A DNA stretch of 64,000 nucleotides, from assembly GCA_002269645.1 (NCBI GenBank), contig NIVC01000143.1, forward strand, positions 372,001 through 436,000, written 5' to 3'. The stretch comes from Macrostomum lignano. Its lineage: Eukaryota. The position numbers and the translations under genes are program-made. The notes beneath the pieces are model-generated. The model was given only the letters and a program-made list of their open reading frames with translations, made no database searches and was not told where the DNA came from. Positions within the stretch are counted from its first letter, which is position 1, and the number at the start of each line of letters is the position of its first letter. This document shows, piece after piece, positions 11,738-33,372 of this stretch.

Positions 11738-11785
11738 CAAGGACCACTAGGAACACTTTGTTGTAGTCTAGTACGGTAGTCCTTG
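11738..11785. mobile_element. 48-bp internally deleted hAT MITE
   Basis: Ends CAAGGACCAC...GTAGTCCTTG, the same family as 13636-13861. Flanks TATCAGCA/CATCAGCA match at 7 of 8 positions. The paralogous site near 23760 has no insert. Confidence 0.7.
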
Positions 11786-12149
11786 CATCAGCATTGGTGG
11801 ATCGTTGATGTGATAATGTTAATATTTCACGTCGCTAATTTTGACACTTCGCTGCCCGAAGCCTGAGATTCCTGAGGTCCCCCTAAGCCCTGTATGTAGA
11901 ATTAAAGAATGCACCACACCAATCCAAGTTTTAATTGCATGCAGATAATTAAAATGGACGCCTATTTTTTTAACCTTTTCCTCTCTTCAGTTGGTGGTCC
12001 AACTCTTTACTACTTCCAAAAACATTAGTTTAAAACCTTTAATAGCCTGACTATCAATATTTCCTCCCCGGACTAAATTACTAACAGTAGTACAAATGCG
12101 TATCTGTGCTATATCTGTGCCCCAGCCTCGGCTTGAAAGGCCGGCACGG

Positions 12150-12720
12150 TGATACAGTGCCGCGCTGTAATCTCGCTCGTTGCCGAAACACGAAGGCCGT
12201 CCGTCAGCATCCATGGCTCTGCGTTGTATAGTGCGACGGTCTCGACCACCGCCTGGAACATCGCCACTCTCAGGCGGTCAGATGGGGCCTCAGACTTCAG
12301 GACAACCCTCACAGACCGAAAGGGGCAGCTCAAGAAAGTCCACGGCGACGCTGTGCAAATCCTCGCAGACACCGGAAACCGGAATGCAGAGGGTAGATGA
12401 ACTGTAAGCTTTGGTTTGGTCAGAGACCTCATTCACCTGTCATCTGCGCCTCGGCACAACCTTTCAGCCTCGACGTCATCCAGCACGCAGAGCACGACGG
12501 CCTTCTGCAGCCAGTTTGAGCAGAATCGCTTAAGCCATACTGCGACGAACTTATCAGCTATCGTTGTGATTCGAACGCTATCGAGAAGTAATAGTCTTTC
12601 AATCCGATAGTTTTGTTCGCACCTGAATCGTAGCGTATGGAGGACTGCAACGCCATTCAGTCTAAAGCAATTGTGCAGAACCGTTTGGCTGGATATTGGC
12701 ATCATTTTAATGATTCTTGC
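12150..12720 (-). mobile_element. Degenerate RTE-like LINE RT fragment
   Basis: Minus strand reads AMFQAVVETVALYNAEPWMLT, resembling the LF...VE.VLLYG.ETWTL segment of RTE-type RT. A paralogous copy lies at 24330-24900. Confidence 0.6.
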
Positions 12721-13029
12721 AGCCAACGGCAGCACAATGTCTACTCAATAAATATTGTTAACAACTGAATATAGGGGAATTCGGCATGAACAGGAGCATT
12801 AAGATCTGTATTTGTAAGACTGTAATTCTTTAGAACAACTGTTTTTTAGAATTGGCAGTAGCTAAAGTGTGGGGTTGTCTAGATCGCATCAATAAGAGAC
12901 CATTTAAAAATTATATTAACCTTTTTAAAATGCTTCGTATTAAAAGCTGGCATAAGTAAAGCCTGGATGAAGTTCTCTTTTTGCGCATCTGACTGCACAT
13001 AAGTGTACACTGCTGTTGATAAACTGTAG

Positions 13030-13333
13030 TAATATTAATGGATTACACCTGCCCTAATTTTCACATGTGCAACCAACAGCTTAGCCATAGCAATTGCGCG
13101 GCGTATCTGAAGGCTGCGTACGACTCTTCAGACGAAGGATTGGTGGACCGCCACACTCAGCCTCATTTACCTTAGCTAATGCTGGCACCCATTTACAGCA
13201 GGGTAAATTGAAGCAATGCAGAGATAAGTTAAGTGTCTTATTCAAGCACACAATTAGTTCCGAGTGGGTCTAGAATCGAACCCCCGATCTTTCAGTCATG
13301 AGTCCGCCGCTTTAACCACTAGGCTACAACCCC
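13030..13333 (-). mobile_element. tRNA-derived SINE
   Basis: Head GGGGTTGTAGCCTAGTGGTTAAAGC (A box) and GGTTCGATTC (B box), shared core TTGCTTCAATTTACCCTGCTGTAAATGGGTGCCAGCATTAGCT, AT-rich tail. Related copies at 25240, 54090 and 58617. Confidence 0.85.
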
Positions 13334-13635
13334 AGTTCAATTTTATTTACACGATTTCACAAGTTGGCAAAGCAGAAACTGCAGAAAGACTATGTACACA
13401 CTTTTACGCCTTCTGTACAAAATCTTATCTACAAAAAACACCAACCTCTCTCCCTCCGTCTGCTGTCTGCGTGCAATTCTGGGTCAATTTTGATCGTTTT
13501 CTGCAAAAGCTTGTACAGTCCTTTACCCCAAATCTAAACGTATTCATGGAAGAGGAGAGAATGTTTTATTTCACTATCTTGCAGAAGGTTGATCATATAA
13601 AACAGTTTTTTCATATGTTTCAGTAAAGTCTCCGC

Positions 13636-13861
13636 CAAGGACTACTTAAGTAGAAGGACGCTGCACTCCCGAATGGTGTAGATTTTTTTGAAGGCCATTT
13701 TTCAAAATGCTGTTATTTTTATTTTGCAAGCCATTGAAGATGAAAATCGTGAATTTTTTGTATCTCGTTAATGTATTTTTCGGCGAAAATTGGCCTTCAA
13801 AAAAAATTACACGAACCGCGAGTGCAGCGTCCTTCTATAAACGATACTTAAGTAGTCCTTG
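13636..13861. mobile_element. 226-bp hAT MITE, about 60 bp upstream of the NHL-1 ATG
   Basis: Perfect 17-bp TIR CAAGGACTACTTAAGTA plus inner inverted repeats; exact 8-bp TSD GTCTCCGC (13628-13635, 13862-13869); the paralogous site near 25797 is empty. Confidence 0.93.
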
Positions 13862-13929
13862 GTCTCCGCTCAGGCATAAATACGGAAGAAGCCCTTCACA
13901 GCTCAGCAGCTAAAATCTCAGCATTAAAA

Positions 13930-15486
13930 ATGTCGTCAGACGCGAACGCCACTCAGTGCAGCATCAGAGCATGCAATAAATCGATCCACGATGAGGGACC
14001 CCGCACCGGAGTGTCTCTGTGCAGAGTTCACTTCGACAAGGAGGTGCTTTAGCTCACTGAGCAGAAGGACATCCTGATGAAGAAGCTGCGCGCTCTTAGG
14101 GACTTCTCAGACACGTCGCAGCTGCGAGTTGAGCAGAGCGCGCTAGCAGCAGAGATCGAGGACGTTAGAGAGATGTTCGACGAGCTGGAGGAGGAGCTGC
14201 GACAGTGGCGGCAGCGGACAGAGGCTCGAGTGCAGGCGGTGCACGACTCGGTAGCTGATCACCTGAGAGACGCGTCGGAGGCGGAGCAGTGCGAGAAGGA
14301 CCTGACGGCTGCTTCCGAGGCTGGAGACGTGCGGGAGATGGCGAAGCTTGCAGCCACCACCGAGCTGTGGCTGGAAGAGGCCAGCGAGCGATCGGCGAAG
14401 TTTAACGAGACTCGTTTGAAGCTGCGCGAGCGGCAAAGCTCGGTGAGTCATGGACTCAGTAGTGATGTGGTCGTTCGGTCCGTCGGAGACGTCGCGGCAG
14501 GAGTGCAGCAGCTGAAGCTCGTCATCAACAAGCATATGACTAGCGTGATGCAGCAGTGCTGGCTTGAAGATGAAGATGGACAGACTTCGACCAACAGGTC
14601 AATGACTACAATTGACAAACTTGAAGATCAACCATGTCTCTTGTGTTGCTGCTCAAACACTGCTGGATTTGTCTGCGACTCAGCAGGTCGCATTGCAAAG
14701 GCTGGACCATCGAGCTCTGGCACCAAGCCGCTGCCTCAACCGAGCATCTTTATTTCATTTGACGAGAAAAAAGTAGATTATTTGCAGGTGGTGTCTCTCG
14801 ATGGAAGCGAGAGGCTGGAGTACCACTCAAAACTGAACTGGAGAGAATTTATCACCGGACTTCACTGCGACAATGAGAAGCAGATGCTGTTTGTGAGCCA
14901 GTATCGGTCTGTGACAGTTTCTGACCTGAGCGGAGAAATTACTCGAATAATCACGGCAGAGAGCCTGGGCCTGAGTGCTTTAGGAGTTCATGCCATTTGC
15001 GGGAACATGGACAAACTGTTTGTGTCAAATATGAACTTAAAAGGTGTTAATTTAGTCAGCAAAAAGTCCGGAAATCTCGAGAGCTCACTTGACGTTTCAC
15101 ATCTTGGTGACAATTTGGACGAGATCGCCCTACACGGAAGCAAGATTTTGCTGGTAGATAATAGTCTCGGCAAGATTCGTAAAATATGCTCCATCAACGG
15201 TCAGCTGATCTCGGGTTATCCTGCCGAAGCCGATAGCAGATTGATCCGGCCTGTTCAAGTCGCTGTGGACAGCAGAGGTGTTCTGTTCGTCACAGATGCT
15301 GTGAATAACACAGTTTGTGCGTTTTTATGCTCGGGAGAACTTCTTCAGACTTTTGGCGGGATACGGCAAGAAGAAAGTTTTTTTTCAAAACCCTTTGGTT
15401 TGATTGTTGTGCAGTCAGAATCAGGTGAGTTGCTAGTTGTTGCCGATTGTCATAATAGTTGTCTGCGAGTCTTCCCGTTGGATTAA
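13930..15486 (+). pseudogene. Zn-motif/coiled-coil/NHL (TRIM-like) gene copy 1, with a premature TAG at codon 41; pseudogene or N-truncated gene restarting at Met50
   Basis: ATG at 13930 is colinear with the copy-2 start. TAG at 14050-14052 replaces AAG of copy 2. A 469-aa ORF (14077-15486) remains open, with NHL repeats (PVQVAVDSRGVLFVTD, KPFGL.V...LVVAD..N.CLRVF). Confidence 0.8.
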
Positions 15487-15914
15487 AAAGCCAACGAACA
15501 AACCTATAAATCAAGGATCATTGATACTCTATTGGAATTTAAAATTTCCGTGAAAATTTCTAACATTTTTGTTTATTCTTTTAGAACTATTGTGTTGCAG
15601 AAGCAAGCTAAATTAAGACTTTGAAATGCAACGCTCCTATTATAGCCATTTATGTATAATTTGCTTGATGTGCTACATATTTTAGTGCCGATATTCAGTA
15701 TTCTTATTCTTAAAGACGCGACTAGATATCTTATTTATCATAGCATAATACAGTAATGAATTACCATCCAGTTCAAAACTTCTTTCTGATAAATAATGCG
15801 GATCTGACTTATTGTTTAATCTGTTTTTTGAAAATTTTAATATTAATTACAATGTGTTCTGGTCATTACTTTAAAAATTAAAAACACAGAAATTAATCTA
15901 CTATATACTATCAT

Positions 15915-16014
15915 TTCGATAACCGTTATCGGTTATCGTTATCGCCCTTAACGTTATCGCCTTAACGTTATCGATTAACGTTATCGCCCTTAACGATAAC
16001 GTTATCGACTCCTG
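15915..16014. mobile_element. Terminal fragment of a DNA transposon with GATAAC/GTTATC subterminal repeats
   Basis: Clustered CGTTATCG/GATAAC motifs end in GACTCCTG (reverse complement CAGGAGTCGATAAC). The other end was not found. Confidence 0.5.
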
Positions 16015-16320
16015 TAGCAAAGAAAACAAATTGAGCATTCTCGAGGCTATGTACATCAAGGCTCAGAAACCAAGTTTGAACAGCCAGTTAGCCATGGGGG
16101 GTGCAAGCCGCCAACTCAATGTGTTTTAGCTACGTTGGCAGTCTCGTTGAACTTTATTTAGGTTTTCTTTCTCTTGCTAACCGGACTGGACTGAAATTGA
16201 TTTGCACTTGCATTGTACAGTCTTCATTTCTTAAATAAAATATATAACTTGGTTCTGTGTGATTAATTGACGCGTCTGCCCTGAAGATGAAGATGAAGAT
16301 GAAGATGAAGATTTTGAGTT
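16013..16320 (+). mobile_element. Penelope-like element 3' fragment (GIY-YIG endonuclease C-terminus and 3' flank)
   Basis: 16013-16129 translates to CSKENKLSILEAMYIKAQKPSLNSQLAMGGASRQLNVF*, like the L.ILE..YI....PSLN.Q end of Penelope ORFs. It is followed by CCCTGAAGATG and a (GAAGAT)n run. Confidence 0.7.
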
Positions 16321-16598
16321 TGCTCTACTTAATTGTTGTTAAGCGAGCAACCCTACCCGATTTTGGCACTATCACGAGCGCTAAGCCTTGCAGATTTGAA
16401 TAACTTTTTGTGTCTTTTAGTGACTTAGCGACTTTAACTATTTTTGGACTAAATTGGAATCTCGGCTTGGGTCTGCTCGTGCAATTAACAAACTTGACGG
16501 CCAACCCTCAAAGCACATTAAAGTGTACATACCTTACCTAACGATAAATAAAGTTACGGCCGCTGTACACTCCTATGTGAGTATGTGTGACTCAGGGG

Positions 16599-17449
16599 CA
16601 GTGTTGGGCAAGTTACTCAAAAAAAGTAACTTGCGTTACTGTAACTTAAGTTACCAATTTTTAAAAAGTAACTTACGTTAGCCTAGTAACTTTAGACTAA
16701 AACCTGGTAACTTTTAAGTTACTGTCCGTTATTCACTTCCGTTACCCATGTTATTAACAAAATTTTCTGCTTTTTTCACATTGCACATTTTTTCACATTG
16801 TTGTTACCGAAATTTGCCATTGGGCATTGGGATTAACCGATTAACAGACAGAGACAGGAATTGGCGACACGATGTGAGGCAAATAGAAGGACCAATGGGC
16901 AATGGCAATCAATAATTGAAATTATAAATTATAAAATAAACGAATATCAATAATTCAACAGAGTAAAATAAATAGAACTGTATAAAATGGTGTAGTGTAC
17001 TGCAGTGCCAGTGGAGGGACTTGTGGAGGCTAAAGATGAATTTCTTTCTTTGGTTGTTTGTTTGAATCAAACTTGAAAATTTTTAGTAACGAAAATGAAA
17101 AGCGAAAATATTTTACCGAAATTAACAAAGTAAAACATGTTTCAAGTATTTCTTCATTAATTAAGCGCAAAACCATATGATACTATTCACTTAATTTTGA
17201 ATTTAGGAATGAAAAATGCAAAAACATGTGACAACCGGCGTAATAGCTAAGAATTTCAGTTTTCAAACTGAATTTCAAATTTAAATATTGCGATTGTTGC
17301 AAAGTAACTGTAACGGACTTCCGAAATTTGAGTAACTTCCGTTACTCCGTTACTAAAATAAAAAAGTAACTTGCGTAAGGAACGCTTTACGAAAAAGTAA
17401 CTTGCGTTACCATTTGCAAGTTACTCGGTAACGGAAGTGCCCAACACTG
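16599..17449. mobile_element. 851-bp non-autonomous hAT transposon
   Basis: TIR CAGTGTTGGGCA...TGCCCAACACTG; many GTAAC/GTTAC subterminal motifs; exact 8-bp TSD CTCAGGGG; a single CTCAGGGG at the paralogous site near 28206. Confidence 0.95.
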
Positions 17450-17486
17450 CTCAGGGGAGTCGGCGGAATGGGCAGTAATGCTTTTC

Positions 17487-18681
17487 CGTAAAGACGGTCT
17501 CTGACTGTTTTTACCCTGGCTGCCTCTCTGGTAGCTTGTCTTAGGGTTGTGCGCAATCCGATTGACCTGGCTTATGCTAGCCCAATTAACTAAGGGTCCG
17601 CCCCGGAGGGGCTGTGCCTGTTCTAAAAATAACCCAACCATTTTTTTTTCGTACATTCCAATTTTATTGGCCCTCGGCCTTGGGTTAGGGGGGTGTACCT
17701 GGAGTGAGTGTGTACTCTGGACTGCACTGTGGCTAGAACGGGACTGAGCCCCCCGGTCTTACCCGCCCTGCAGGAGAAAATGACCATTCACGAAGGTGTA
17801 CGGTAGAGCCTAGTTGATGCCAGCCCTGAGGCTGAGCCCCGGGTTGCAGGTTTGCAATACGCCTGCTTGTAGGATTCAGGTGCTCCTCCTTTCTGCCATT
17901 CTTTTTTCTGGGCTGGCATCCCAGCGCGGTTTTATCCCTTTGCTTTAATGCTTTTATTCTTCTATCTGGCCATTAGTTTGCCTTCCAATCTTTGGAGTTA
18001 TGAGCTCTGCCCTCCCTGCCCGGTCCATCCTGCTCTGTCCTTGGTCCATCTGCTGGCTCCTCTGATTGTCTCCCTGCCTAAGTGTCTCTGGCTCTCATCC
18101 TGACAGTGGATTGGTGTCCTGGGAAGGATGTTCGTCCCGAATCGGGGATACCAGCTGAGACCGGGTCCTCTTGCTCCTTGTGCCCCTTCCCGACCCCTTG
18201 GCCTGGCCTCCAATATAGAGCTGGATAGGCGATACCCCTTGTGGCTTGCAGCCCTATAGGTTTTTTGGTCGCTAGCCTGATAGGAGACTCGCCCTCGGAT
18301 ACAAGCCTTCCAGACTCGCTCCAATTGTTAAGCCTTTCCAAGACTTCTGGGTTTCCCCGCTCTTGGACGGCTTTCAGTAGTATACCAAACATTTTCAATT
18401 CCAATTCTGTTTTTGAAGCGCACTCCCGAGGACTTGTCTGCTGGGTGGTGGCCTGGGTGGATTCGGTCCTAGCACCGTCCCTGATTCCACTTTTGGGTTG
18501 GCGGTGTCTTGTACCATAGGCTTGGGCTAGTAGCTCCAAAAATTCCCCCTGGCCAATACGTCGGGGTCCAATCAGGAGGGTATCTCGGGCTTAGGCCCCT
18601 GGAGGTGCCCCTCAGCGGCAGAGCCCTCCCCTGGGCTGATCCGCGGGTAGCCCCCGGCTTCCCACCCTCGTTTAACACAAC
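17487..18681 (-). mobile_element. 1195-bp GC-rich insertion of unknown class with a 10-bp TSD
   Basis: Flanked by AATGCTTTTC (17477-17486, 18682-18691) and absent from unit 2 near 28235. No TIRs. The minus strand has AATAAA (17668-17663) followed by A9 (17649-17641). Confidence 0.75.
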
Positions 18682-18962
18682 AATGCTTTTCGCCGGTTGT
18701 GTGACAATGTCGCTTAAAGTGCGCCAGGGTGCACACAACCCTGCTTTTAACTAGTAGCATCCTAATCTTCTGCAAATTAGAATCATTGCACATGTAGCGA
18801 CATATTACTTAAACACGCAACGAGGATAACACAACTGATCATATTCAGATGCTGCCATCACCAATCAAGATTGAGGAATTTCGGGTCGAAACTATCTCAT
18901 TCGCCCTCGGTCACGACAGCCAGTAGCAGCGCTTCCTCAATCATAATTAGACAACCTATTCG

Positions 18963-18971
18963 TATATAAAA
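18963..18971 (+). promoter_or_regulatory. TATA box of peptide gene copy 1
   Basis: TATATAAAA about 75 nt upstream of the ATG; TATAAAA is conserved at 28540-28546 in copy 2. Confidence 0.6.
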
Positions 18972-19044
18972 GAGACATCATTTTAAATAGTCATGACTTT
19001 TATTGCCAACGAATCTGCTTAGTTCTCTAAGTTAATTAAACACA

Positions 19045-19379
19045 ATGAGCGGCAAAGTAATCTTTGTGTTGCTGATCATTATCTTAGCTCTGACTGGTGT
19101 CAGCCGATCAATGCGATTACCAGCGTCTGAAGATTCTGTAAGTACCTCCGCCTTATAGCAGCGTTGACCTGGCTACAGCCAATAGTTGTTTAAAATTAAA
19201 AGCCGGAAAATTTCCAGCAGCCACCATCGGAGCTGAATGATTTTCTCCGCGTCATCCTGGCTGAGGCCCGAGCCAGACTGGGCGGTAATTTCGCCGACAA
19301 GAGGTCTGGCGAGAAGTCGTCGCGCTACGGTCGCTGCAGCGGAGTGTACCATCCGGTGGCGTGCTTCGGAGTGCAGTGA
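19045..19379 (+). CDS. Secreted prepropeptide (neuropeptide/toxin-like precursor), copy 1, 84 aa, 2 exons
   Basis: Exons 19045-19137 and 19218-19379, with an 80-bp phase-0 GTAAGT...TTTCCAG intron. Protein: MSGKVIFVLLIIILALTGVSRSMRLPASEDS-QPPSELNDFLRVILAEARARLGGNFADKR-SGEKSSRYGRCSGVYHPVACFGVQ*. TATA upstream, AATAAA at 19526-19531. Frame and splice sites are conserved in copy 2. Confidence 0.85.
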
Positions 19380-20261
19380 TTTGACCTGCTCGACTACGTC
19401 ACAAGCCTATCTTGAGCCATGCCTCGATTAAACTGAACAGAACACTACAAAAGTTCAGTTGTGCATTTGCCAACTGTAGTGCCGAAATAGACGGGAACTT
19501 ACAATATCACCAGTTGATAATTTTTAATAAACGCAATCGCAATTGAAAAAAAGGAAATTACGAGCCTACTCGTATATGCAGACAGTTTCATTATATAGTG
19601 ATTTAGTGTTTTTACTGCGATTGGTATAAAATCGATCAAAGACCACAAGAAGATACTGTTTGATTAGGACGTACATGTAAAACTCGAATTTAATGGAATT
19701 AGCTTCCACTACCACCAAGCAAAGAACAGAACAAGGAACATGGCAAATAGCTGGCGTAACCAGAACAGAAAGGACAAAAGCCTTCTTCTCAAAGCCAAAC
19801 CAAAAAGCAACAAGCAGAAGAAAGAAAACTAGCAAGAGCCGCTGTTAAAAGAGAAGAGATTCGCCGCATTCTGGCCGACCCGGGGTGGGCACGGCTTCGC
19901 AGGCACTACTTGCACTGTTGGTCTTGGCAGACGACTGCAGCTAGCGGGTGTGATAACGGGTCAAAGCGGGTGCATGGCCAGGTGCTAGTGCCGGCAACAG
20001 TACTCTGTGCATTTTGACGAACTGGTTAGTTTTCCCATAGAAAAGGAAGTGAGTAGTAGTACTTCTTCATACTTTGCTAGCGAGCTCAAACGCAGCTGAG
20101 GCGGATAATTGACGTGCCTTCTCACTGGACATCTTGAACAATTCCCTTCAGGCGCACAAACTTGACATTACAGTCTCACCAAAATCTTCTGCGGCTGGAG
20201 TGCCTTAATTGTAGTCGCATGATTTTCTTCCGGTTATATATATGTGTAACCATCTAGATTA

Positions 20262-20470
20262 TAGGGGTCGGCAAATTCCGGCTCGCGGACCCGCCAAGCC
20301 TCGCTATGCGGCCCTCTCAAGGCCGGCTTGTGTCTATTCTCAGCTCTCTTTCCTCTATAATTTCCTCTCGCTTTTCTTCTCCCTTCTCTTCTCTGGTCTC
20401 CTCTCCTCTCCTCTGTTTTCTCCTCTCCTCTCTTCTCCCTTCTCACCTCTCCTCTCCTCTACGAGCTTAT
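20262..20470 (+). mobile_element. Charlie-like hAT MITE 5' part with CT-rich interior
   Basis: TAGGGGTCGGCAAATTCCGGCTCGCGG head shortly after ATCTAGAT, followed by CTCTC-rich sequence. Confidence 0.65.
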
Positions 20471-20997
20471 GACTGGGTTTTTGTCCCGAGCAGCAGGTGC
20501 AGCACCCAAACGCCGCTTCCATAGGATCTGGGATAGGGACTTCTTGGACAAAGAAGAACAATAATTAAGTAGATGAGCTCTGAACGGGTACCTAATATCC
20601 ATGTGTTGATTAATTTTCATTTATTCATACTTTTTTCCAGTTGCTGCAGTATCAAATTGACAATAATCGAATGTACAGATTGCAGACTGCTCATAGTCAC
20701 AGACGTATCCTTCTTGTGTTTAAATGTTGCTAAATGCATGGTACATGCACTTTCGAGAGCCTATATAGAATAGAAGAATGTAAATGAGTCAGTCCCATGA
20801 GTGAGTGAGAGGAGGACCCAAATAATTTAGCTTATTTTTTTATTCCAATAATTTAGGGATTTGCATTTATAGTGATCCTCGATTTTCAGCTTAGGTTAAG
20901 GAGTGAATCCTACAAATTAGTCACGATGTGGTTTTTTCTGGATCTACTTTTAGGTGTTTTTCCGGTTATACAGGGGTGGGGGTGCATCCATCTCGAT

Positions 20998-21628
<631 letters not shown>

Positions 21629-22190
21629 ATCTATACGAGGTAGATTATTGATAATCATGGGTTTGATTTTAACTCAGACCAGCGGATTGTTCAGGCGCTA
21701 AAATTGTTCCTTAGGAATTGTGGCGCCAAAATAATTTTCAAAGAAAATGACGGTAAAATCAAGAAGGTCAAGACATACGCACCATGCTTTCAAATTTTTA
21801 AACCGTCAAAACACTTCAGTTTAGAGAATCCTGAAGTAGACCAACAAAGGGGCACTAATTTGAAAAAGGCAATCCTCATTAGCCAATATTCAGTATTAAA
21901 AAAAAATTGATTCAATTTATTTGTTAAAATTTTAACCATATTGAAATAAGGCAAAATGAATAAAATCAAAATGAAAAAACAACAATTAGCTAATGAAATT
22001 ATATAAAAATGACTACAAAACCAAATTTGCAGACAAATAAATAAATCTTCTGAATTAAAAAACCTCACGGAACTCCGTTTGATTTTACTTTGGCAAAAAA
22101 CTGAAAATAATTTCGTCAAAAAAGTCAGTCATTTACACGCACAACATGCAATATAATACTTAGGTTACAACAAAGGTTTTTTTATTACGT

Positions 22191-22668
22191 CAGGGGCCAG
22201 ACAGAGAACCTAGTGCATGACTGCGGGGCAGCGAAGAGAGGATAGAGGGAATAGAGAAAAGAGATAGAATAAAGTGGACAAGAGGAGAGAAGAGATGACG
22301 CGAAAGGAGAGAAGATAAGTAAGAGGAGATAAGAAAAGAGAGGAGAGAGGAGACGAGAGAAAAGATGGAGAGAGGAGGCAGGAGAAAAGAGAGAGGAGAG
22401 AAGAAAAGAGAGAGGAGAAGAGAGAGGAGAAAAGAGAGAGGAGATGGAGAGGAGAGAAAAGGAAGGAGAGAAGAGGTGGAGAGGGGAGAGGAGAGAAGAG
22501 GAGAGGTGAGAGGCAGAGAAGACAAGAGAGAAGAGAAGGAGATAAGAGAAGAGAAAGAGAAGAGAGCTGAAAAGACACAAACCTTAAGCGAGCTGGATCA
22601 CTATGGTGAAATTCCAAAGGACCCAAGGGCCGCATGTGGCCCGCCGGCTGGAGTTTGCCGAGCCCGTG
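22191..22668 (-). mobile_element. Same hAT MITE family, minus orientation, GA-rich interior
   Basis: Ends GGCCGCATGTGGCCCGCCGGCTGGAGTTTGCCGAGCCCG; starts GGCCAGACAGAGAACCTAGTGCATG. Confidence 0.75.
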
Positions 22669-22753
22669 ATTACAGTGGTAAATTCCTAAATAAGCACTAA
22701 AACAATTTGATAATTTTATGTTTGCTGTCAATTATTTTCAGTTTTAACTTATG

Positions 22754-23086
22754 CTACAGTCTAGCCGAGACCGGATCCAGCTCTTCCCGAAACAGTTGAA
22801 TAATTCTGCACCAGCTGTCTACCTGAGCCTCGTGATGCTGTTTTGAATTGCCGCCATAGTCCATGTTCAAGCCATAGAGTCCGTGATAGCACAGCGGGGT
22901 GCAGGGGCTGATTGGCGGCTCTAGCAGGTGACCCGAACCTGGATAGGCCACGTGATCAACTCGACGCTGTCCGTTAGATCTTCGAATTCGAGCAGCCAGA
23001 CGCGCTCCGGTGTCCACAGGCATTGAGTAGTCATCGAGGCTGGATAGGAACAGAAACCTGCAGGTGGACTTTTCCACAGGTAGCTC
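22754..23086 (-). other. Orphan but intact duplicate of ACOT-C terminal exon (possible alternative last exon or pseudo-exon)
   Basis: Differs at 6 of 333 nt from 33373-33705. Same acceptor (tggcag|GAG), open frame, stop and ARL terminus. No exon 1 or 2 copy lies upstream; the adjacent intron minisatellite is cut at about 23710. Confidence 0.85.
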
Positions 23087-23182
23087 CTGCCATGGAGATT
23101 TTGAATAAGGTGATGGGAAGTTTTTGTCAATGATCCTGACCAATTAGATCTTGAAAATAAAAACTGTTGGAAAACGTGTCAA

Positions 23183-23420
23183 TCCAGACTGGTAATTTTG
23201 CTTAGCAGCAATACTAAAAATGCCGCACCCGGCCCCAAACCAAGCAGCCCATTCCGCTGATTCCTGGGCACATACAGGCTAAGCCAATTCTGTACGCTGG
23301 CACGCACTCACACGGGGTGCACAGCGGACCTTTGACTTTCTAATCAAGTCAGGCATGTACACTCTGTGTCTTTGGGAGCTGGCCTTCATGCCTGTAAATC
23401 GCACGACAAATATTCGTAAC
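23183..23420 (-). repeat. Interspersed repeat (unclassified)
   Basis: The minus strand matches 28050-28260 and the interrupted copy at 16470-18740 (GTGTACATGCCT, CCGCTGT.CAC.CC.TGTGAGTG, CGGAATGGGC). Confidence 0.5.
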
Positions 23421-23424
23421 TTGA

Positions 23425-23712
23425 AAAATGGGGAGATGGGGTTTTTGAATGGGGAGATGGGATTTTACAAGGGGAGATGGGATTTTTGAATGGGAGATGG
23501 GACTTCAAATGGGGAGAGAGGATTTCTGAATAGGGAGATGGGGTTTTTAAATGGGGAGATGGGATTTCAAATGGGTAGATAGAATTTCAAATAGGGAAAT
23601 AGGATTTTTAATGGGAGATGGGATTTCAAATGGGAGATGGGATTTTACAAGGGGAGATGGGATTTCAAATGGGAGATGGGATTTCAAATGGGAGATGGGA
23701 TTTCAAATGGGG
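23425..23712. repeat. Truncated copy of the ACOT-C intron-2 minisatellite at the duplication junction
   Basis: GGGAGATGGGATTTCAAAT units, as in 33810-34757. Confidence 0.9.
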
Positions 23713-24329
23713 AGGTCTTATAAAGCGCCCCGTCAATGGATTGGTCAAAGTTCTAAGTCAGCATCAGCATTGGTGGATTGTTTATTTGTTAATATCAATA
23801 TTTCATTGGCTCGCTCATTTTGACACTTCGTTGTCCAGGGCCTGAGATTCCTGAGGTCCTCCTAAGTCCCTAGTATTGTAGTATACAACAATGAACCATA
23901 CCAATCCAATCCATTGAATTTGAATGCAGAGAATAGAAAAAGATGTTTTTGGAAAAGTTTCATTACTTAAAAAAATACCTACTTTCACCCAGACAATCCT
24001 ACTGAAGTCCCTATTTTTCGTAAACTTTTTAGTCTCTTCATTTGGGGGTCCAACTCTTTCCTACTTCCAAAAGCATTTGTTAAAAACCCTTAATAGCCTG
24101 ACTATCAATATTTCCTGCCCGGACTAAATTACTAACAGTAGTGCAAATGCGTATCTGTGCTATAGACATGTATCTCGTTAGTCAAGCCAAAACTTAAGCA
24201 TAAAACTTGAAAGTTACTGATGTACCTGCCCCTATCATAAATATGAAAAGAGTTTGCAGTCATAGCTCGTATGGATGTTGCCTGAAGCCAAACAAGCCAG
24301 TCGCACTGGAAACTGATCGCTCAGGCCAG

Positions 24330-24900
24330 CGTGCGCCGCGTCTACTTGTTGGTCAAGCGAGTCCGTCAGCGTCCAGGACTCAGCATTGCATTGGAGTATT
24401 GTATACTGTATAGCAGGACAGCCTCTACTACCGCTGGGAACAGCGCCACCTTCAGACGGTCAAATGGGCCTCAGACTGCAGGACAGCCTTTCACAGAACG
24501 AAAGGGGCTAGATCCTCGCGGACACCGGGAACCGGACTGCCGCGATAGATGAACTGCTGACAACACGTAAGCTTTAGTTTGGTCGGAGATCTCACCTGTC
24601 CATCTGCGCCTCAAGACAAACTTTCAGCCTTGATGTCGTCCTGCACGCAGATCACGACGGCCTTCAGCGTGTTGACCAGCAGGGCGACACTTGCCGCAAC
24701 AGCAAACAGCTTTAGGAGACGAACGTAGCAGCTAACGTTGCGATTTAAACGCTAACGAGACGCAATTATAGTCTTCGAATCCGATAGTTTTGTTCGGACT
24801 TGCATCGTAGCGTATGGAGGACCGTAACGCCATTTGGTCTAAAGCAACCGTTTGGCTGGATTGTGGCAATCATTTTCATGATTCTAGCAGCCAACGGCAG
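24330..24900 (-). mobile_element. Degenerate RTE-like LINE fragment (paralog of 12150-12720)
   Basis: Colinear with the unit-1 copy; the minus strand reads AVAASVALLVNTLKAVVICV, like the post-YADD GL.VN..KT segment. Confidence 0.55.
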
Positions 24901-25239
24901 CCCAATGTCCACTTAATAAATAGTGTTACCAACCAAATAAAGCGGAATTCGGGATAAACACGAGCATTAAGGTCACAAAATCGCAGCATGCATGAATCAT
25001 AGAAATCGAGATCTATATTTCTACGACTCTGTAATTCGTCAGAACTGTTTTCTAGAATTGTCGATAGCTAAAGTGCGGGGTTGTCTAGATCGCATCAATA
25101 AGAGACCATTTAAAAATTGTCCAAAATTAAATAAAACATTTTAAAATGCATCATTTTAAAAGCTGGCATTAAGTAAAGCCTGGATGAAGTTCTCTTCTTT
25201 GCGAATCTGACTACACATAAGTGTACACTGTTGTTGTTT

Positions 25240-25549
25240 AATAATAGTAGTAATAATTCATTACACCTGCCCTAATTGTCAGATGTGTAACCGGCCGTCA
25301 GCCGTGGCTACTGCGCAGTGCTGCTGAAGGCTGTTCAGTCGAATGACTTGGAGAGGGGGGGTCGCCACACACAGCCTCATTTACATGTACCTCAGCTAAT
25401 TCTGGCACACATTTTACAGCTGGGTAAATTGAAGCAATGCAGAGTTGAGTGTCTTTTTCAAGCACACGATTTGTTCCGAGTGGGTCTAGAATTAAACCCC
25501 CGATCTTTCAGTCGTGAGTCCGCCGCTTTAACCACTAGGCTACAACCCC
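25240..25549 (-). mobile_element. tRNA-derived SINE (paralog of 13030-13333)
   Basis: Same A box, degenerate B box and core. Confidence 0.85.
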
Positions 25550-25863
25550 AGTTCAATTTTCTTTACACGATATCACAAGTTGGCAAAAGCAGAAAGACAT
25601 TTATGCCTTCTGTGCAAACCTTATTTACAAAAATACACCAACCCCTCTCCATTTGCCGTCTGCACATAATTTTGGGTCAATTCTACTTGCCTTCTACTAC
25701 TTCTACTTCTACTACTTGCTAGGAGAGAATATTTTATTTTACTATCTTGAAGAAGCGAATTGTATAAATGAGTTTGTTTCATATGTCTCAGTAAAGTTTC
25801 TGATCAGGCATAAATACAGAAGAAGCCCTCAAGAGCTTAGCAGCTAAAATCTCAACATTAAAA

Positions 25864-27423
25864 ATGTCGTCAGACGCGAGCGCCACTCAGTGCAGCATCA
25901 GGGCATGCAATAAACCGATCCACGATGAGGGACCCCGCACCGGTGTGTCTCTGTGCCGAGTTCACTTCGACAAGGAGGTGCTCAAGCTCACTGAGCAGAA
26001 GGACAACCTGATGAAGAAGCTGCGCGCTCTTAGGGACACTCCAGACACGTCGCAGCTGCGAGCTGAGCAGAGCGCGCTAGCAGCAGAGATCGAGGACGTT
26101 AGAGAGATGTTCGACGAGCTGGAGGAGGAGCTGCGACAGTGGCGGCAGCGGACAGAGGCTCGAGTGCAGGCGGTGCACGACTCGGTAGCTGATCGTCTGA
26201 GAGACGCGTCGGAGGCGGAGCAGTGCGAGAAGGACCTGACGGCTGCTTCCGAGGCTGGAGATGTGCGGGAGATGGCGAAGCTTGCAGCCACCACCGAGCT
26301 GTGGCTGGAAGACGCCAGTGAGCGATCGGCGAAGTTTAACGAGACTCGTTTGAAGCTGCGCGAGCGGCAAAGCGCGGTGAGTCATGGACTCAGCGGTGAT
26401 GTGGTCGTTCGGTCCGTCGGAGACGTCGCGGCAGGAGTGCAGCAGCTGAAGCTCGTCATCAACAAGCATATGACTAGCGTGATGCAGCAGTGCTGGCTTG
26501 AAGACGGAGACGGACAGACTTCGACCAACAGGTCAATGACCACAATTGACAAACTTGAAGATCAACCATGTCACCTGTGTTGCTGCTCAAACACTGCTGG
26601 ATTTGTCTGCGACTCAGCAGGTCGCATTGCAAAGGCTGGACCATCGAGCTCTGGCACCAAGCCGCTGCCTCAACCGAGCATCTTTATTGCATTTGACCAG
26701 AAAAAAGTAGACTATTTGCAGGTGGTGTCTCTCGATGGAACCGAGAGGCTGGAGTACCACTCAAAGCTGAACTGGAGAGAATGGATCACCGGACTTCACT
26801 GCGACAATGAGAAACAGATGCTGTTCGTGAGCCAGTCTCGGTCTGTGACAGTGTCTGATCTGAGTGGAGAAATTACTCGAATAATCACGGCAGAGAGCCT
26901 GGGCCTGAGTGCTTTAAGAGTTCATGCCATTTGCGGGAACATGGACAAACTGTTTGTATTAAATATGAACTTAAAACATGTTCATTTAGTAGGCAAGAAG
27001 TCCGGAAATCTCGAGAGCTCACTTGACGTTTCACACCTTGGTGAAGATTTGGACGAGTTCGCCCTACACGGAAGCAAGATTTTGCTGGTAGATTGGTATA
27101 GTCTCGGCAAGGTTCGTAGAATATGCTCCATCAACGGTCAGCTGATCTCGGGTTATCCTGCCGAGGCCGGTCTCAGATTAAGCCGGCCTGTTCAAGTCGC
27201 TGTGGACAGCAGAGGCGTTCTGTTCGTCACAGATGCTGTGAATAACACAGTTTGTGCGTTTTTATGCTCGGGAGAACTTCTTCAGACTTTTGGCGGGATA
27301 CGGCAAGAAGAAAGTTTTTTTTCAAAACCCTTTGGTTTGATTGTTGTGCAGTCAGAATCAGGTGAGTTGCTAGTTGTTGCCGACCGTCAGAATAGTTGTC
27401 TGCGAATCTTCCAGTTGGGTTAG
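25864..27423 (+). CDS. Intronless TRIM-like protein, copy 2 (519 aa): N-terminal C-x4-C-x15-C-x2-H motif, coiled coil, C-terminal NHL beta-propeller
   Basis: Full ORF with E/R/L/A-rich heptad region (about aa 35-200) and NHL signatures RPVQVAVDSRGVLFVTDAVNNTV and KPFGLIVV...LVVADRQNSCLRIF. No RING. A CATAAATA TATA-like motif upstream is conserved in both copies. Confidence 0.85.
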   Translation: MSSDASATQCSIRACNKPIHDEGPRTGVSLCRVHFDKEVLKLTEQKDNLMKKLRALRDTPDTSQLRAEQSALAAEIEDVREMFDELEEELRQWRQRTEARVQAVHDSVADRLRDASEAEQCEKDLTAASEAGDVREMAKLAATTELWLEDASERSAKFNETRLKLRERQSAVSHGLSGDVVVRSVGDVAAGVQQLKLVINKHMTSVMQQCWLEDGDGQTSTNRSMTTIDKLEDQPCHLCCCSNTAGFVCDSAGRIAKAGPSSSGTKPLPQPSIFIAFDQKKVDYLQVVSLDGTERLEYHSKLNWREWITGLHCDNEKQMLFVSQSRSVTVSDLSGEITRIITAESLGLSALRVHAICGNMDKLFVLNMNLKHVHLVGKKSGNLESSLDVSHLGEDLDEFALHGSKILLVDWYSLGKVRRICSINGQLISGYPAEAGLRLSRPVQVAVDSRGVLFVTDAVNNTVCAFLCSGELLQTFGGIRQEESFFSKPFGLIVVQSESGELLVVADRQNSCLRIFQLG

Positions 27424-28621
27424 AAAGCCAAATAACAATCGAACTTTTACTTGACACTCAACTGGAAGTTAAAATCTTCCGTGAAACTTTCTAACATTTT
27501 TGTTTATTCTTAGAACGATTGTGTCGTAGAACCATGGCAAATTATTACTTCAATAAAAATGTAACAATGGTGAGGACTGTAGCCAATATTTATACATAAT
27601 TTGTTGCAAATACTGCACATGCAAATGTTGATATTAAATAGTTTCTATTTTAAGGACGCGACTGGATAGATATCTTTTTATACTAGCTAAATACAGTAAT
27701 AATTTGCTATACTGGTTCAAAACTTCTCTTTGATCAATAATTCGAAGCTGATGTATTATCAAATCTGCTTTCGAAAATTTCAAAAATAATTTCAATCTGT
27801 GCTGGTTTTTACTTTAAAAAATAAAGAAAAAACATTAATCCAATATATACGATCAAATTATAGCTTCATGAAAATATTAACATTAATATGTTGAAATATT
27901 GTGCCAGTATTTTTTACATATTTTCTGAATTGTGTACGGCCTTCAAATTGACTTTCTAGCGTTACCGCGATCTGAGCTAAGCCTTGCAAAATCGGATAAC
28001 TTTTAGTGACTTACTAATTTAGGACTAAATTGGAATCTCGGCTTGGCTCTGCTCGTACAATTAACGCCCTTGAGGGCCAACCTCCAAAGCACAGGGAAGT
28101 GTACATGGACATGCCTAACGATAAATTAAGTTAGGGCCGCTGTACACTCCTGTGTGAGTGTGTGCTTGCGCGTATGACTGCATACGTATCCTGCATGTGT
28201 GCTTACTCAGGGGAGTCGGTGGAATGGGCAGTAATGCCTAGCTCTCGCCGGTTGTGTGAGAAAGTCGCTTTAAGTGCGCCAGGGTGCACACTGCCCTCTG
28301 TCCTTAACTAAATAGCATCTTAAACTTTGGAAGGGGCCTCCTGTCTGTAAATTAGAATCATTGCACATGTAGCGACTTAGTACTTAAACACGCAACGAGG
28401 ATAACACAACTGATCATATTCAGATGCTGCCATCACCAATCAAGATTGAGGAATTTCGTGTCGAAACTATTTCATTCGCCCTCGGTCACGACAGCCAGTA
28501 GCAGCGCTTCCTTAATCATAATTAGACAATCTACTCGGATATAAAAGAGACATCATTTTAAATAGTCATGACTTTTATTGCCAACGAATCTGCTTATTAG
28601 TTCTCTAGTTAATTAAACACA

Positions 28622-28956
28622 ATGAGCGGCAAAGTAATCTTTGTGTTGCTGATCATTATCTTAGCTCTGACTGGTGTCAACCAATCAATGCGATTACCAG
28701 CGTCTGAAGATTCTGTAAGTAACTCCACCTCATAGCAGCGTTTACCTGGCTACAGCCAATAGTTGTTTAAAATTAAAAGCCGTAAATTTTTCAGCAGCCA
28801 CCATCGGAGCTGAATGATTTTCTCCGCGTCATCCTGGCTGAGGCCCGAGCCAGAGTGGGCGGTAATTCCGCCGACAAGAGGTCTGCTAGGAGGTTATCGC
28901 GCTACGGTCCCTGCAGCGGAGTGTACCATCCGGTGGCCTGCATTGGAGTGCAGTGA
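28622..28956 (+). CDS. Secreted prepropeptide, copy 2, 84 aa, 2 exons
   Basis: Exons 28622-28714 and 28795-28956, 80-bp intron. Protein: MSGKVIFVLLIIILALTGVNQSMRLPASEDS-QPPSELNDFLRVILAEARARVGGNSADKR-SARRLSRYGPCSGVYHPVACIGVQ*. Confidence 0.85.
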
Positions 28957-31589
28957 TTTGACCGCTCGCTTACTTCACAATCCTATCTTGAGCCAGCCTA
29001 AATTGAGTTGAAAAGACCACGACAAAATTTCAATAGTGAATTTGTCAACTCAAGTGCCGAAATATACGCGAACTTCATATTGCCAGTTAAAAATCTTTAA
29101 TGCAGGCATTCGCGTAAGAAAAAACCAATTATATGTAGAAATTTTCAGTATACAGTGTTTTAGTGCTTTTCTGCGATTGGTAAATCCATCAAGGACCCTA
29201 AGAACTGTTACTGTTAAATTATGACGTGCATGTAAAATTCGCATTTGATAGAATTTGCCTGCACTGTCAACCGCGACAAAGAACAAAGCAACGAACATGG
29301 CGCAACGAGCTGGCATAACCAGGACGGAAGGCACAAAGCCTTCTCAAGCCAAAGCAAAAAACCACTAGCAAAAAACTAGCAAGAACCGCTGACAAAAGCG
29401 AAGAGCTGATTCACCGCATTCAGACCGACCTGGGGTGGGCACCTCTTCGCAGGTTGTGCACCGAATTCTCGGCAGCACTGATGCCCGTTAAGGGCTGTTG
29501 TCCTGGTGAACATTTGACCAAAGAAAACAGACCCTGCTGCTGCAGGTTCAGGCAGTGAGACAGAATAGGTGAACAGGTGTCAGTGCGACAGCAGTGCTGA
29601 CTCTGTGCGTCATGTCGAATCGGTTAGTTTTCCGGTAAAGAAGGAAGTGAGCGGCGGACTATCTTTGCACTTTGACAGCAAGCTCAAATGTAGCACAGGC
29701 GGATCGACATGACTCCTGACAGGACTTCTTGACCATTCCTAACCAAGCGCATAAACTTGGCGTTGGAGTCTCATCAGGATCTCCTGTGGCTGGAGCGCCG
29801 GTGACCTGTGACATGCGTTTATTCTTCAGGTTTTATAGGTGTATCCATCTCTAGATTATACGGGGTTGGCGAACTTCGGCCCTCACAATAGCGATCCGAC
29901 CCGCTCGTGGCTTGTGTCTATTCTCAGCTTTCTCTTAACTATTAACTAGAAAACTTCTCTTAACTAGAAAACTCAATCAAGCGGACAAACGTAGGCACAA
30001 GCGACACTTAAAATTTAGCAGCTCTGAGCGGGTACTTAATATCGAGCGTTGATTAATTTTCACTTATTCAAAACTCTTCTGCAGAGTTGCTGCATTATTC
30101 AAATCGACAATAATCGAATAACAGAATACAGACTGCTCATAATTGTCACATAGAAGCATGATTTTTTGTGTACACGTAGCTAAATGGTACATGTACTTTC
30201 GAGAGCCCTATAATTGTTTCCTTTTTGAAAAGTAAATAGACTTACCCAAGAGCTATAGTTAAAAGTAAAAACATCGCTGTGTAGAGATAATGCAGACATT
30301 TTAGACGAATTCAACTGACGTCGGCTACGCCTTAGATAATTCGATCAAGGATCATGCAACTGCCTGCCAGGGTTTTAATAATCCTAGGGAACACGATTAA
30401 TTTGGACATGAAAGTGTAAAATTTCAATCTTTATAATAGGAATTCTTTAAACATTTACTATCATTTGTCGAGCAGATGTGCACTTGGTTATACTTGATAC
30501 TCAAACTATTTTTAACATATTGTCACATTCTCAGACATTTATCTGGATCGCAGCCCCGCCCAGTTCTCGACAGTCAAAATAGACCAAGCAGACTGGCTGA
30601 CTCTTGTCTAGCAAAAGAGATGACAAGCGCCGCACTTAAGGCGTAGGCGAACTAGGCGTTGACAAAAGCAAGAATGCAGCTCTTTACAGTTCAAAGTCGC
30701 TTTTTTCTAACCTCCAACCAACCGCGGGTCTCCACCCACCGCTGGTAAAAAATTAAGTTGTTAAGTTGTTTGAAAATAAACTATTAACTCGTAACACTGA
30801 TCTGTTTATCTTCTCAGGAAAGTTTCAGGAAAGTGAAAGGAAGGCTAAAGATAGCCCTACACTGCTGTTTGGGATTCTATTAATCAGCGTAGCTTGCGGA
30901 ATGAAACGGAATGTAATACTCCAAACTCCAAAGCAGGAAAATGAAGCAGGTTTTTGAATTTCTAATCTGGAAAGGCCGCAAAATAATCAGTAACGCAGGT
31001 TTAAAAGCATATTGGGCAGTATTAATGCCTGAAATCCAGTAAAAAAATTATAGTGGGAAACCGAATTTATGCCCAATATGCCATCTGGCTATAAACAGGT
31101 TATGTTATTGTTGCTGTTTAGCTGTTGAACATTGTTCATACGTTATAGCAATTTATGTTCTTGATTTTTAATGTTTCTTATTAAAAATGACTACATCAGA
31201 TAGAAAAACTCGTTCACCGTGATCTACAAAATGTTTTCTGTATAGAAATTAGTCATGGCCTGCTCAGCAGGCCAAAGCCGCAAGCTACGGTTATGCAGAC
31301 TTATTTTTCGAAACACATCGAAATGATTCGCAAGCCATACACCATGAGCTATGGCTGCAGAGCAGGCCACCCGCATCCTCGGGGTTTTAAAACGTCACTT
31401 ACTACAGATGTAGTTAATACGTAGAAAAATGAAATGAGTGAATTTTTAGCTCACTGATGATCATCAAGCTGTAATTTTTTTAAATAATTTAATTATACGT
31501 TTAGTGATCTTCGAGTTTCAGCTCAGGTGCAGTGACGTGAATCCTTCGAATTAGTCTTCCGGTTATAAAGGTGTATTCATCTCGATCAG

Positions 31590-31830
31590 GCTCGGCAAAC
31601 TCCGGGCCCGTGGGCCACGTGCGGCCCGGCCCGCCAAGCCTTTCGATCAGGCAACTAGGGTCCTTTGAAACTTCACAATAGCAATCCCGTCCGCTCCTCT
31701 CAGCTCTCCGGCCTCTCCTCTCTCCTTTCATGTAAGAGAGTACTCTATGTAAGAACTCCCATAGAGAACTACATGTCCGCAGTAGTACCATGCGCTAGAT
31801 TCTCTGTCTGGCCCTTAAAACAAAAATCCC
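31590..31830 (+). mobile_element. Charlie-like hAT MITE (paralog of 20998-21628, short interior)
   Basis: CAGGCTCGGCAAACTCCGGGCCCGTGGGCCACGTGCGGCCC head and CATGCGCTAGATTCTCTGTCTGGCCCTTAAAACAAAAA tail. Confidence 0.75.
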
Positions 31831-31888
31831 CCCTAATAAACCCTTTATCTATAGATTATGGATGATGAGGGGCTTGGTCCTTATCTGA

Positions 31889-31965
<77 letters not shown>

Positions 31966-33287: not shown

Positions 33288-33372
33288 TTACAGTGGTAAA
33301 TTCTTAAATAAGCACTAAAACAATTTGATAATTTAATAGTTTGCTGTCAATTATTTTCAGTTTAACCTTATG

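Follow-up and report, generated by a model that had tools for sequence, protein, structure and literature searches.

A ring of eight residues between two cysteines (C-x8-C) is a feature common to all elevenins (PMC10175484). Elevenins are non-amidated, CCHamides are amidated, and the CCHamide, GGNG, and elevenin families are considered relatives of one another (PMC5627052). In allatostatin-C (AstC), the two cysteines are 6 residues apart (PMC8786951), and precursors of the somatostatin type are laid out with a single peptide at the C terminus (PMC5627052). Luqin precursors carry a C-terminal pair of cysteines with a spacing that is generally 10 and is 8 in C. elegans (PMC7041311). We describe here a short, two-exon gene of the flatworm Macrostomum lignano that is present in two copies, A and B, in a 64,000-nucleotide stretch of contig NIVC01000143.1 (positions 372,001 to 436,000 of the forward strand; hereafter the window, numbered from its first letter). 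Copy A is predicted to encode an 84-residue precursor composed of a signal peptide, a pro-region, a Lys-Arg (KR) site, and a C-terminal peptide with one C-x8-C ring. The gene is a new, unassigned example of a well-known kind, small prohormones whose peptide carries a single disulfide loop, and is not surprising.

The gene is genuine and transcribed in M. lignano. Because six genomic copies are intact, gene models derived from RNA exist, and the coding sequence (CDS) and promoter diverge less than the 3' flank, it is more than a chance reading frame. We read its product as an orphan, lineage-restricted prohormone of the peptide-hormone or neuropeptide type, duplicated as A and B and not assignable to a known family, and give this reading about an even chance of being right. 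Judged from its residues, the predicted peptide mixes the ring size and C-x-G tail of elevenin and EP/GGNG with the precursor layout and P-V-A-C-F end of AstC/somatostatin.

Gene structure, copies, and transcripts

The features of the two copies, in window coordinates, are as follows.

18780 to 19044, plus strand: copy A's predicted proximal promoter and its 5' leader, conserved and near-identical in 6 copies
19045 to 19137, plus strand: exon 1 of copy A (93 nt, from the start ATG at 19045), codons 1 to 31, with the predicted signal peptide and the start of the pro-region (translation, hydropathy, AlphaFold2)
19138 to 19217, plus strand: intron of 80 nt, GTAAGT...TTCCAG
19218 to 19298, plus strand: exon 2 pro-region, residues 32 to 58, with helix SELNDFLRVILAEARARL (AlphaFold2; isoelectric point)
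19299 to 19304, plus strand: Lys59-Arg60 dibasic site in ADKR/S, unchanged in 6 copies, a putative cleavage site
19305 to 19376, plus strand: C-terminal 24-mer SGEKSSRYGRCSGVYHPVACFGVQ (translation), whose likely core is a 20-mer from S65
19335 to 19364, plus strand: ring Cys71-SGVYHPVA-Cys80 (C-x8-C), unchanged at the protein level in 6 copies, with a predicted disulfide
19526 to 19531, plus strand: AATAAA, present in three A-type copies; B-type copies have TAATGCAGG instead
28622 to 28956, plus strand: copy B gene (exon 1, 28622-28714; intron, 28715-28794; exon 2, 28795-28956)

Exon 2 of copy A extends from 19218 to 19379 and closes with the stop codon TGA (19377-19379), giving a spliced product of 84 residues, MSGKVIFVLLIIILALTGVSRSMRLPASEDSQPPSELNDFLRVILAEARARLGGNFADKRSGEKSSRYGRCSGVYHPVACFGVQ. 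Read without splicing, the frame closes after 37 codons, and removal of the intron, with its donor GTAAGT at 19138, is therefore needed. Since the intron splits the reading frame, the gene does not figure in a mechanical list of open reading frames (ORFs). The TATA box, (T)ATATAAAAG, occupies 18963-18972, and the AATAAA comes 147 nt past the stop codon. An earlier note on this DNA had proposed such a gene, missed by the ORF track, with a TATA box, a GTAAGT donor, an 80-nt intron, an AATAAA, and an 84-residue product; every one of these elements was found where the note had placed it. The acceptor of copy A is doubled (CAGCAG at 19215-19220, a NAGNAG arrangement), and its alternative use could possibly remove Gln32; the first CAG is the one used in the RNA-derived GenBank proteins. 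A short upstream ATG (ATGACTTTTATTGCCAACGAATCTGCTTAG, 9 codons) is found at 18993-19022; it follows the TATA box by about 25 nt and may be at or 5' of the transcription start.

Copy B, which the earlier note had also reported as intact, has the same architecture as copy A, an undisturbed frame, and a TATA box at 28539-28547; its mature end reads SARRLSRYGPCSGVYHPVACIGVQ. Neither AATAAA nor ATTAAA was found within 340 nt past its stop codon, all A-type copies keep AATAAA, and the 3' ends used may differ between the copies.

Copies A and B occur at three homeologous or duplicated M. lignano loci on three contigs, for a total of six genomic copies. The ORF and both splice sites are intact in all of them (6/6), with no exon indels. 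In one homeologous copy, a 5-nt deletion shortens the intron to 75 nt and the frame is kept, while indels are numerous in the flanks. Divergence between A and B amounts to 2 to 9% in the promoter (-250 to -1), exon 1, intron, and exon 2, versus 19 to 25% in the 3' flank. Across the six copies, the promoter and 5' leader diverge by 1 to 9%, versus 15 to 25% further out, and the TATA box is unchanged. The copies are 94% identical. The 335-bp gene shows 22 differences between A and B, of which 15 are exonic and alter 9 residues. Copy-specific positions that distinguish A from B lie at 19103, 19106, and 19309-19319. The ring CSGVYHPVAC, the KR site, the motif SRYG, and the GVQ end are identical in all six copies. 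Within the 30 nt of the ring, A and B differ by a single silent change, against about 6 predicted from the flank rate (~19%); by our own estimate, which rests on small counts, the Poisson probability of one change or fewer is ~0.02.

Database records bear on transcription. The copy B protein is identical to GenBank entry PAA70276.1, [quoted passage not shown], and the proteins of the window have identical or near-identical counterparts in PAA70276.1 and PAA70278.1. The gene identifiers are BOX15_Mlig027246 and Mlig010105, both described as "hypothetical protein". Thus, the earlier note's suggestion of an undescribed peptide family does not hold for the gene itself, which GenBank already lists, although the entries supply neither a name nor a characterization. 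On homeologous contig NIVC01001253.1, the two copies are annotated apart, each as a 335-bp, two-exon CDS with an 84-residue product. Window positions 16045-31956 agree at 100% with a locus retrieved from NIVC01000143.1 of assembly GCA_002269645.1 (Mlig_3_7). Gene models of this assembly were made solely from RNA-seq, transcriptome assemblies, and TransDecoder (PMC5730564). Because 84-residue models with the same exon structure come from this RNA-only annotation, spliced transcripts are indicated. GenBank model BOX15_Mlig027246g2 (PAA89620.1) on NIVC01000143.1 connects copy A exon 1 with copy B exon 2 over ~9.7 kb, and a chimera of the same type is found on NIVC01000038.1 (PAA92826.1). Such models are probably artifacts of multi-mapping, the alternative being real read-through splicing. 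PAA89620.1 merges two genes and should be split.

These records also bear on whether the copies could be a short, non-functional ORF in a transcribed, recently duplicated region, its copies kept alike by gene conversion and its gene models generated automatically by TransDecoder. That account would fit the chimeric GenBank models, which show the annotation to be error prone, as well as an intron and promoter conserved like the exons, as gene conversion gives, and a ratio of nonsynonymous to synonymous differences per site (pN/pS) near 1 between the paralogs. We nevertheless consider it very unlikely, as six copies are free of frameshifts and stops despite the many flank indels, the signals form a complete and coherent set (TATA box, ATG, signal peptide, consensus splice sites, KR site, and paired-cysteine end), and the ring is unchanged next to flanks that diverge by ~19%.

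The predicted precursor and its peptide

The N terminus of the precursor (residues 1 to 22) consists of an n-region with Lys4 and a 15-residue h-region (V5-V19; mean Kyte-Doolittle hydropathy, 3.29). A rule-based analysis places (-3,-1)-compatible signal-peptidase sites after G18, S20, and S22, and simple rules of this kind predict that the first ~18 to 22 residues are a signal peptide. AlphaFold2 models two helices (residues 2-22 and 35-52; mean predicted local distance difference test [pLDDT] score, 61) followed by a disordered C terminus (pLDDT, <50), with no globular fold. As modeled, two helices and a disordered end fit a processed precursor and not a folded domain. The pro-region (residues 23-58) is acidic, with an isoelectric point (pI) of 4.7. 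The mature peptide is basic (pI, 8.8-9.5; charge, +1 to +2.5) and Ser/Gly-rich, and no amphipathic or hydrophobic stretch was found in it. The only two cysteines of the precursor fall within the last 24 residues, with eight residues between them. Thus, the generic features of a peptide-hormone precursor are present: an N-terminal signal peptide, as judged by heuristics, and a KR site and ring that are unchanged in six copies.

The stretch directly after the KR site is the most variable part of the precursor. Its spacer, residues 62-65, reads SGEKS, SGKKS, or SARRL, and a second dibasic site lies four residues past KR in the B copies (SARR/L) and in one A copy (SGKK/S). Since these RR and KK sites occur in other copies, a 20-mer is favored over the 24-mer, and the end product is likely (S/L)SRYG(R/P)CSGVYHPVAC(F/I)GVQ. 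The computed average masses of the oxidized 20-mer and 24-mer are ~2171.4 and 2572.8 Da for A and ~2104.4 and 2575.0 Da for B. As the peptide ends in CFGVQ-stop, with no Gly donor before the stop codon, it is not amidated. The earlier note had described this layout correctly, from the hydrophobic N terminus, pro-region, KR site, and C-terminal C-x8-C to the missing amidation signal, and its prohormone-like reading held. Its mature 24-mer was accurate in sequence, but the sites in other copies point to the shorter product.

The differences between A and B are unevenly spread along the precursor. Seven substitutions fall within 11 nt (19309-19319 versus 28886-28896); through them SGEKS becomes SARRL and a new Arg-Arg site arises. 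The cluster resembles the outcome of a single complex mutational event or of local positive selection. The overall pattern is suggestive, no more, of a 5' half that is homogenized by gene conversion or constrained, a spacer after KR that is free to vary, and a ring under constraint.

If the product is an orphan prohormone, its N-terminal 18 to 22 residues would act as a signal peptide for entry into the endoplasmic reticulum, where the Cys71-Cys80 disulfide would close. A prohormone convertase would then cut after Lys59-Arg60, as well as after RR in the B copies or KK in one A copy. The released peptide would be a non-amidated, weakly basic 20- to 24-mer, with 8 residues in its ring and 4 in its tail, which would leave the cell by regulated secretion. 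It would probably serve as an extracellular ligand, most plausibly of a receptor of the G protein-coupled class (GPCR).

Comparison with described peptide families

Homology searches returned no homolog outside M. lignano: phmmer against 1.84 billion representative proteins retrieved the gene's own cluster only, and a word-indexed search of 5.8 billion clusters retrieved the M. lignano cluster alone. Pfam gave no match at an E value of ≤0.01 or ≤10 with the whole precursor, the post-signal part, or the 24-mer, and a PDB sequence search gave nothing at an E value of ≤10. For calibration, a genuine lepidopteran AstC precursor was used as a query against the 5.8 billion clusters and retrieved Lepidoptera only. 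Short prohormones are traced poorly across phyla by such searches, and for this reason the lack of matches says little about family membership.

Families were therefore compared by profile and by individual residues. Peptide lists were taken from paper supplements and comprised 27 elevenin peptides as well as 16 AstC peptides and 19 AstC precursors. Similarity to elevenin, AstC, and EP/GGNG was marginal in each case (P, ~0.004 to 0.13 before correction for multiple tests), and because about five families were examined, none of it is significant.

With elevenin, the peptide has in common a ring of exactly eight residues (C71-SGVYHPVA-C80 in 6/6 copies), a non-amidated end, and, after the second cysteine, Gly at +2, Val at +3, and then a short tail, as in the Aplysia (RPRIDCTRFVFAPACRGVSA) and Platynereis (PDCTRFVFHPSCRGVAA) peptides. 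In Aplysia elevenin, no non-Cys residue is more critical than Gly17. An aromatic-His-Pro triplet in the ring (YHP) is likewise found in Platynereis and Solenopsis elevenin (FHP) and in Pogonomyrmex elevenin (YHP), although the aromatic-x-Pro triplet of the M. lignano ring is one position off relative to that of elevenin. In register, elevenin's Asp/Asn at -1, its aromatic residue and Pro at ring positions 5 and 7, respectively, and its Arg (or Leu) at +1 are all absent. An in-register position-specific scoring matrix (PSSM) for elevenin scored the peptide at -10.5 bits, versus at least 29 bits for members (P = 0.13), and a gapped hidden Markov model gave 0.9 to 4.2 bits (P = 0.015 to 0.12), values that random C-x8-C peptides equal. 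The earlier note's remark that C-x8-C-x-GV recalls elevenin is borne out by the ring, Gly+2, and Val+3, but the profile score stays at the level of chance. The precursors differ as well, in that elevenin directly follows the signal peptide in Aplysia while the M. lignano peptide occupies residues 61-84 of 84, after a 36-residue pro-region and KR.

That note had named two likenesses, to elevenin and AstC, and missed a third: an in-register resemblance to EP/GGNG. EP/GGNG is the lophotrochozoan counterpart of CCHamide. The reference consisted of EP/GGNG sequences such as KCSGKWAIHACWGGN, of which only the motifs WAIHAC and WAIHSC were traced in EP-related literature. Against the EP motif C-x-G-x-W-A-[IM]-H-[SA]-C, the M. 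lignano ring coincides at Ser1, Gly2, the aromatic residue at position 4, and Ala8, and an aromatic-Gly pair follows the second cysteine in both without a gap. The in-register BLOSUM average gave P values of 0.004 to 0.018, which are conditional on C-x8-C. In contrast, M. lignano has Tyr for Trp, His at ring position 5 instead of 7, and a GVQ end in place of GGN(G) or an amide. The precursor order is also reversed, as EP/CCHamide precursors place the signal peptide on the N-terminal side of the peptide and a dibasic site on its C-terminal side (PMC5627052).

Taken together, these features raise the question of a divergent flatworm member of the CCHamide/EP(GGNG)/elevenin group, with the peptide moved to the precursor C terminus and a GPCR of the EP/CCHamide or elevenin type as its receptor. 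The ring of 8 followed by x-G, the elevenin-like tail and free end, and the in-register EP match speak for such a member among families already deemed related. We consider it unlikely, given the elevenin profile scores, the four missing elevenin positions, the absent EP His at ring position 7 and GGN(G)/amide end, and the different precursor order; once corrected for about five families, the P values no longer hold up.

Resemblance to AstC is of another kind, lying in the precursor and in the end of the ring. As in AstC/somatostatin precursors, a signal peptide, a helical pro-region, and a dibasic site precede a single non-amidated cyclic peptide at the C terminus, and lepidopteran AstC precursors (...ADKR/QVRFRQCYFNPISCFRK) have the same ADKR directly before the peptide. 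Relative to AstC peptides such as that of Drosophila (pQVRYRQCYFNPISCF), the peptide has an Arg-aromatic pair 4 and 3 residues before the first cysteine, and its P-(V/I)-(A/S)-C-F end matches in the A copies; the B copies have Ile for the aromatic residue. The ring of 8 differs from both the 6 of AstC and the 10 of somatostatin, His replaces the near-invariant Asn at ring position 3, and a GVQ tail is added. Compared with the AstC consensus C-[YLMA]-[FVI]-N-[PAVIL]-[IV]-[SA]-C-[FYW], P-V-A-C-F fits in the A copies, while the Asn and the peptide end differ.

An AstC PSSM scored 3.0 bits, versus 16 to 19 bits for members (P = 0.005 for the A end, VYHPVA-C-F, and 0.05 for B). With an arthropod-only AstC PSSM, the score was 1.8 bits, which is inside the range of mollusc and annelid AstC (-3.5 to 9), and similarity to the AstC of lophotrochozoans, which are the closest relatives, was weaker (P = 0.04 to 0.14). 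In hhalign, the best alignment of the six M. lignano precursors with the 19 AstC precursors paired SSRYGRCSGVYHPVACF with QVRFRQC--YFNPISCF over 15 columns (P = 0.004), and column-shuffle controls gave P values of ~0.02 to 0.04. A divergent AstC/somatostatin-type precursor, in which a Ser-Gly insertion after the first cysteine enlarged the ring from 6 to 8 and GVQ was added, would account for the shared layout, the identical ADKR, and the lower of these P values, and ring size already varies within the superfamily (6 in AstC versus 10 in somatostatin). We regard it as quite unlikely, since the Asn is changed to His, the peptide extends past the aromatic residue, the B copies have Ile, the score is 3 bits where members reach 16 to 19, and the shuffle and lophotrochozoan comparisons are weaker. 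Flatworms are unmentioned in the AstC/somatostatin evolution papers that were consulted. Thus, the earlier note's comparison of YHPVACF with AstC is upheld for the end and the layout and not for the ring size or the Asn, with profile similarity marginal; its statement that the peptide matches neither AstC nor elevenin exactly agrees with the profile scores and with the missing defining features of both.

The residues before the first cysteine allow a further comparison. Ecdysozoan luqin/RYamide peptides end in RYamide (e.g., PALLSRY-NH2), and those of flatworms and other spiralians have WRPQ or WRPH...RFamide (PMC7041311). Copy A has SSRY-Gly-Arg before its first cysteine and a cysteine spacing of 8, such that SGEKSSRY-G-R could in principle yield an amidated -SRYamide, with the cysteines representing the luqin pair. 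However, Gly-Arg is present in 2/6 copies, the other four having Gly-Pro, which can be neither cleaved nor amidated; WRPQ/WRPH is absent, and the cysteine pair abuts the putative site with no spacer. A luqin/RYamide-type precursor is extremely unlikely and was rejected on the basis of the Gly-Pro in 4/6 copies and the missing WRPQ.

Melanin-concentrating hormone (MCH; DFDMLRCMLGRVYRPCWQV) was compared by eye. MCH has C-x8-C at the precursor C terminus after a dibasic site, Val-Tyr-(Arg/His)-Pro in the ring, and an aromatic residue after the second cysteine. The VY(R/H)P motif of the M. lignano peptide is, however, two positions out of register with the MCH sequence, and its ring has no Arg; on this comparison by eye, MCH was set aside. 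Pfam, which includes a Pro-MCH family, gave no match at an E value of ≤10.

Function, genomic setting, and significance

Several observations weigh against an orphan signaling prohormone. The signal peptide and the cleavage sites were assigned by simple rules, and there is no detectable ortholog beyond M. lignano, leaving deep conservation unproven. No contig derived from SRA data (Logan) encodes the exact protein, the gene identifiers have no entry in supplementary data from four expression studies of M. lignano, and no expression-pattern, peptidomic, or receptor data were found for the gene. Of the 10 codons changed between A and B, nine are replacements and one is silent (pN/pS, ~0.9). The mature region also diverges more than the pro-region, with 7/9 replacements in the 24-mer and 2 in the pro-region, a pattern that is typical of defense or toxin peptides or results from gene conversion of the 5' half.

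This pattern is central to the main functional rival, in which the product is a secreted effector rather than a signal, namely an antimicrobial or defense peptide or a gland or seminal-fluid peptide. Its precursor would join a conserved signal and an acidic pro-piece to a cationic mature end that evolves faster. Frog-skin antimicrobial peptide precursors have this layout, some with a C-terminal disulfide loop. The near-invariant signal and pro-region, the contrast between an acidic pro-piece and a basic mature peptide, and the tandem duplication of a taxon-restricted gene all fit such an effector. It is nonetheless improbable in our view, because the charge is low (+1 to +2.5), the Ser/Gly-rich peptide has no amphipathic or hydrophobic stretch, and the ring never varies. 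Most of the variation falls in the spacer that the new dibasic sites would cut off, and gene conversion of the 5' half would account equally well for the way changes cluster in the 3' half.

The genomic setting is a tandem duplication, listed here with its extent.

11785 to 34757, unstranded: tandem segmental duplication with both peptide genes and two NHL-repeat ORFs (self-BLAST, repeat families D3 to D7, Pfam NHL)

Its units (~11785-23714 and 23761-34757; 10 to 12 kb) contain blocks that are 70 to 97% identical by self-BLAST, along with NHL-repeat ORFs at 14077-15486 (469 residues) and 25864-27423 (519 residues) and low-complexity repeats. The copy A unit holds ~2.1 kb of extra DNA (16587-18690), versus 81 bp in the copy B unit. 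The "two paralogs" of the earlier note are real as two copies, but they are passengers of this 10- to 12-kb duplication, which is present at three homeologous loci. Among the neighbors, an ORF at 22754-23143 on the minus strand resembles the C-terminal part of BAAT/acyl-coenzyme A thioesterase, and the counterpart neighbor gene on a homeologous contig matches Pfam Bile_Hydr_Trans and BAAT_C. Minisatellite arrays are numerous in the window (266-952, 1802-2540, 3095-4360, 4856-5833, 33810-34757, 35308-36124, 54743-56356, 60760-61183, and 62344-62804), with units of 17 to 46 nt in up to ~60 copies; several show strong strand asymmetry of their bases. Two of the arrays, with units of 17 nt (4856-5833) and 18 nt (35308-36124), have a similarity of ~84%.

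No paper with the gene identifiers or peptide motifs was found in the literature, and a dedicated M. lignano neuropeptidome study was not found in the searchable literature. As a flatworm model, M. lignano is transgenic and regeneration competent, and this gene offers it a transcript-supported candidate for a cyclic signaling peptide, with clear predictions of mass, processing, and disulfide bonding. That it is the first recognized flatworm peptide of the EP/CCHamide-elevenin or AstC/somatostatin systems, with an intermediate ring and precursor layout, is a possibility that we consider rather unlikely. If it does belong to such an ancient bilaterian system, it would help to trace how the families diverged and would provide a ligand for an orphan platyhelminth GPCR. 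A link to either EP/CCHamide-elevenin or AstC/somatostatin would extend that system into the Platyhelminthes; otherwise, the gene represents one more lineage-restricted peptide.

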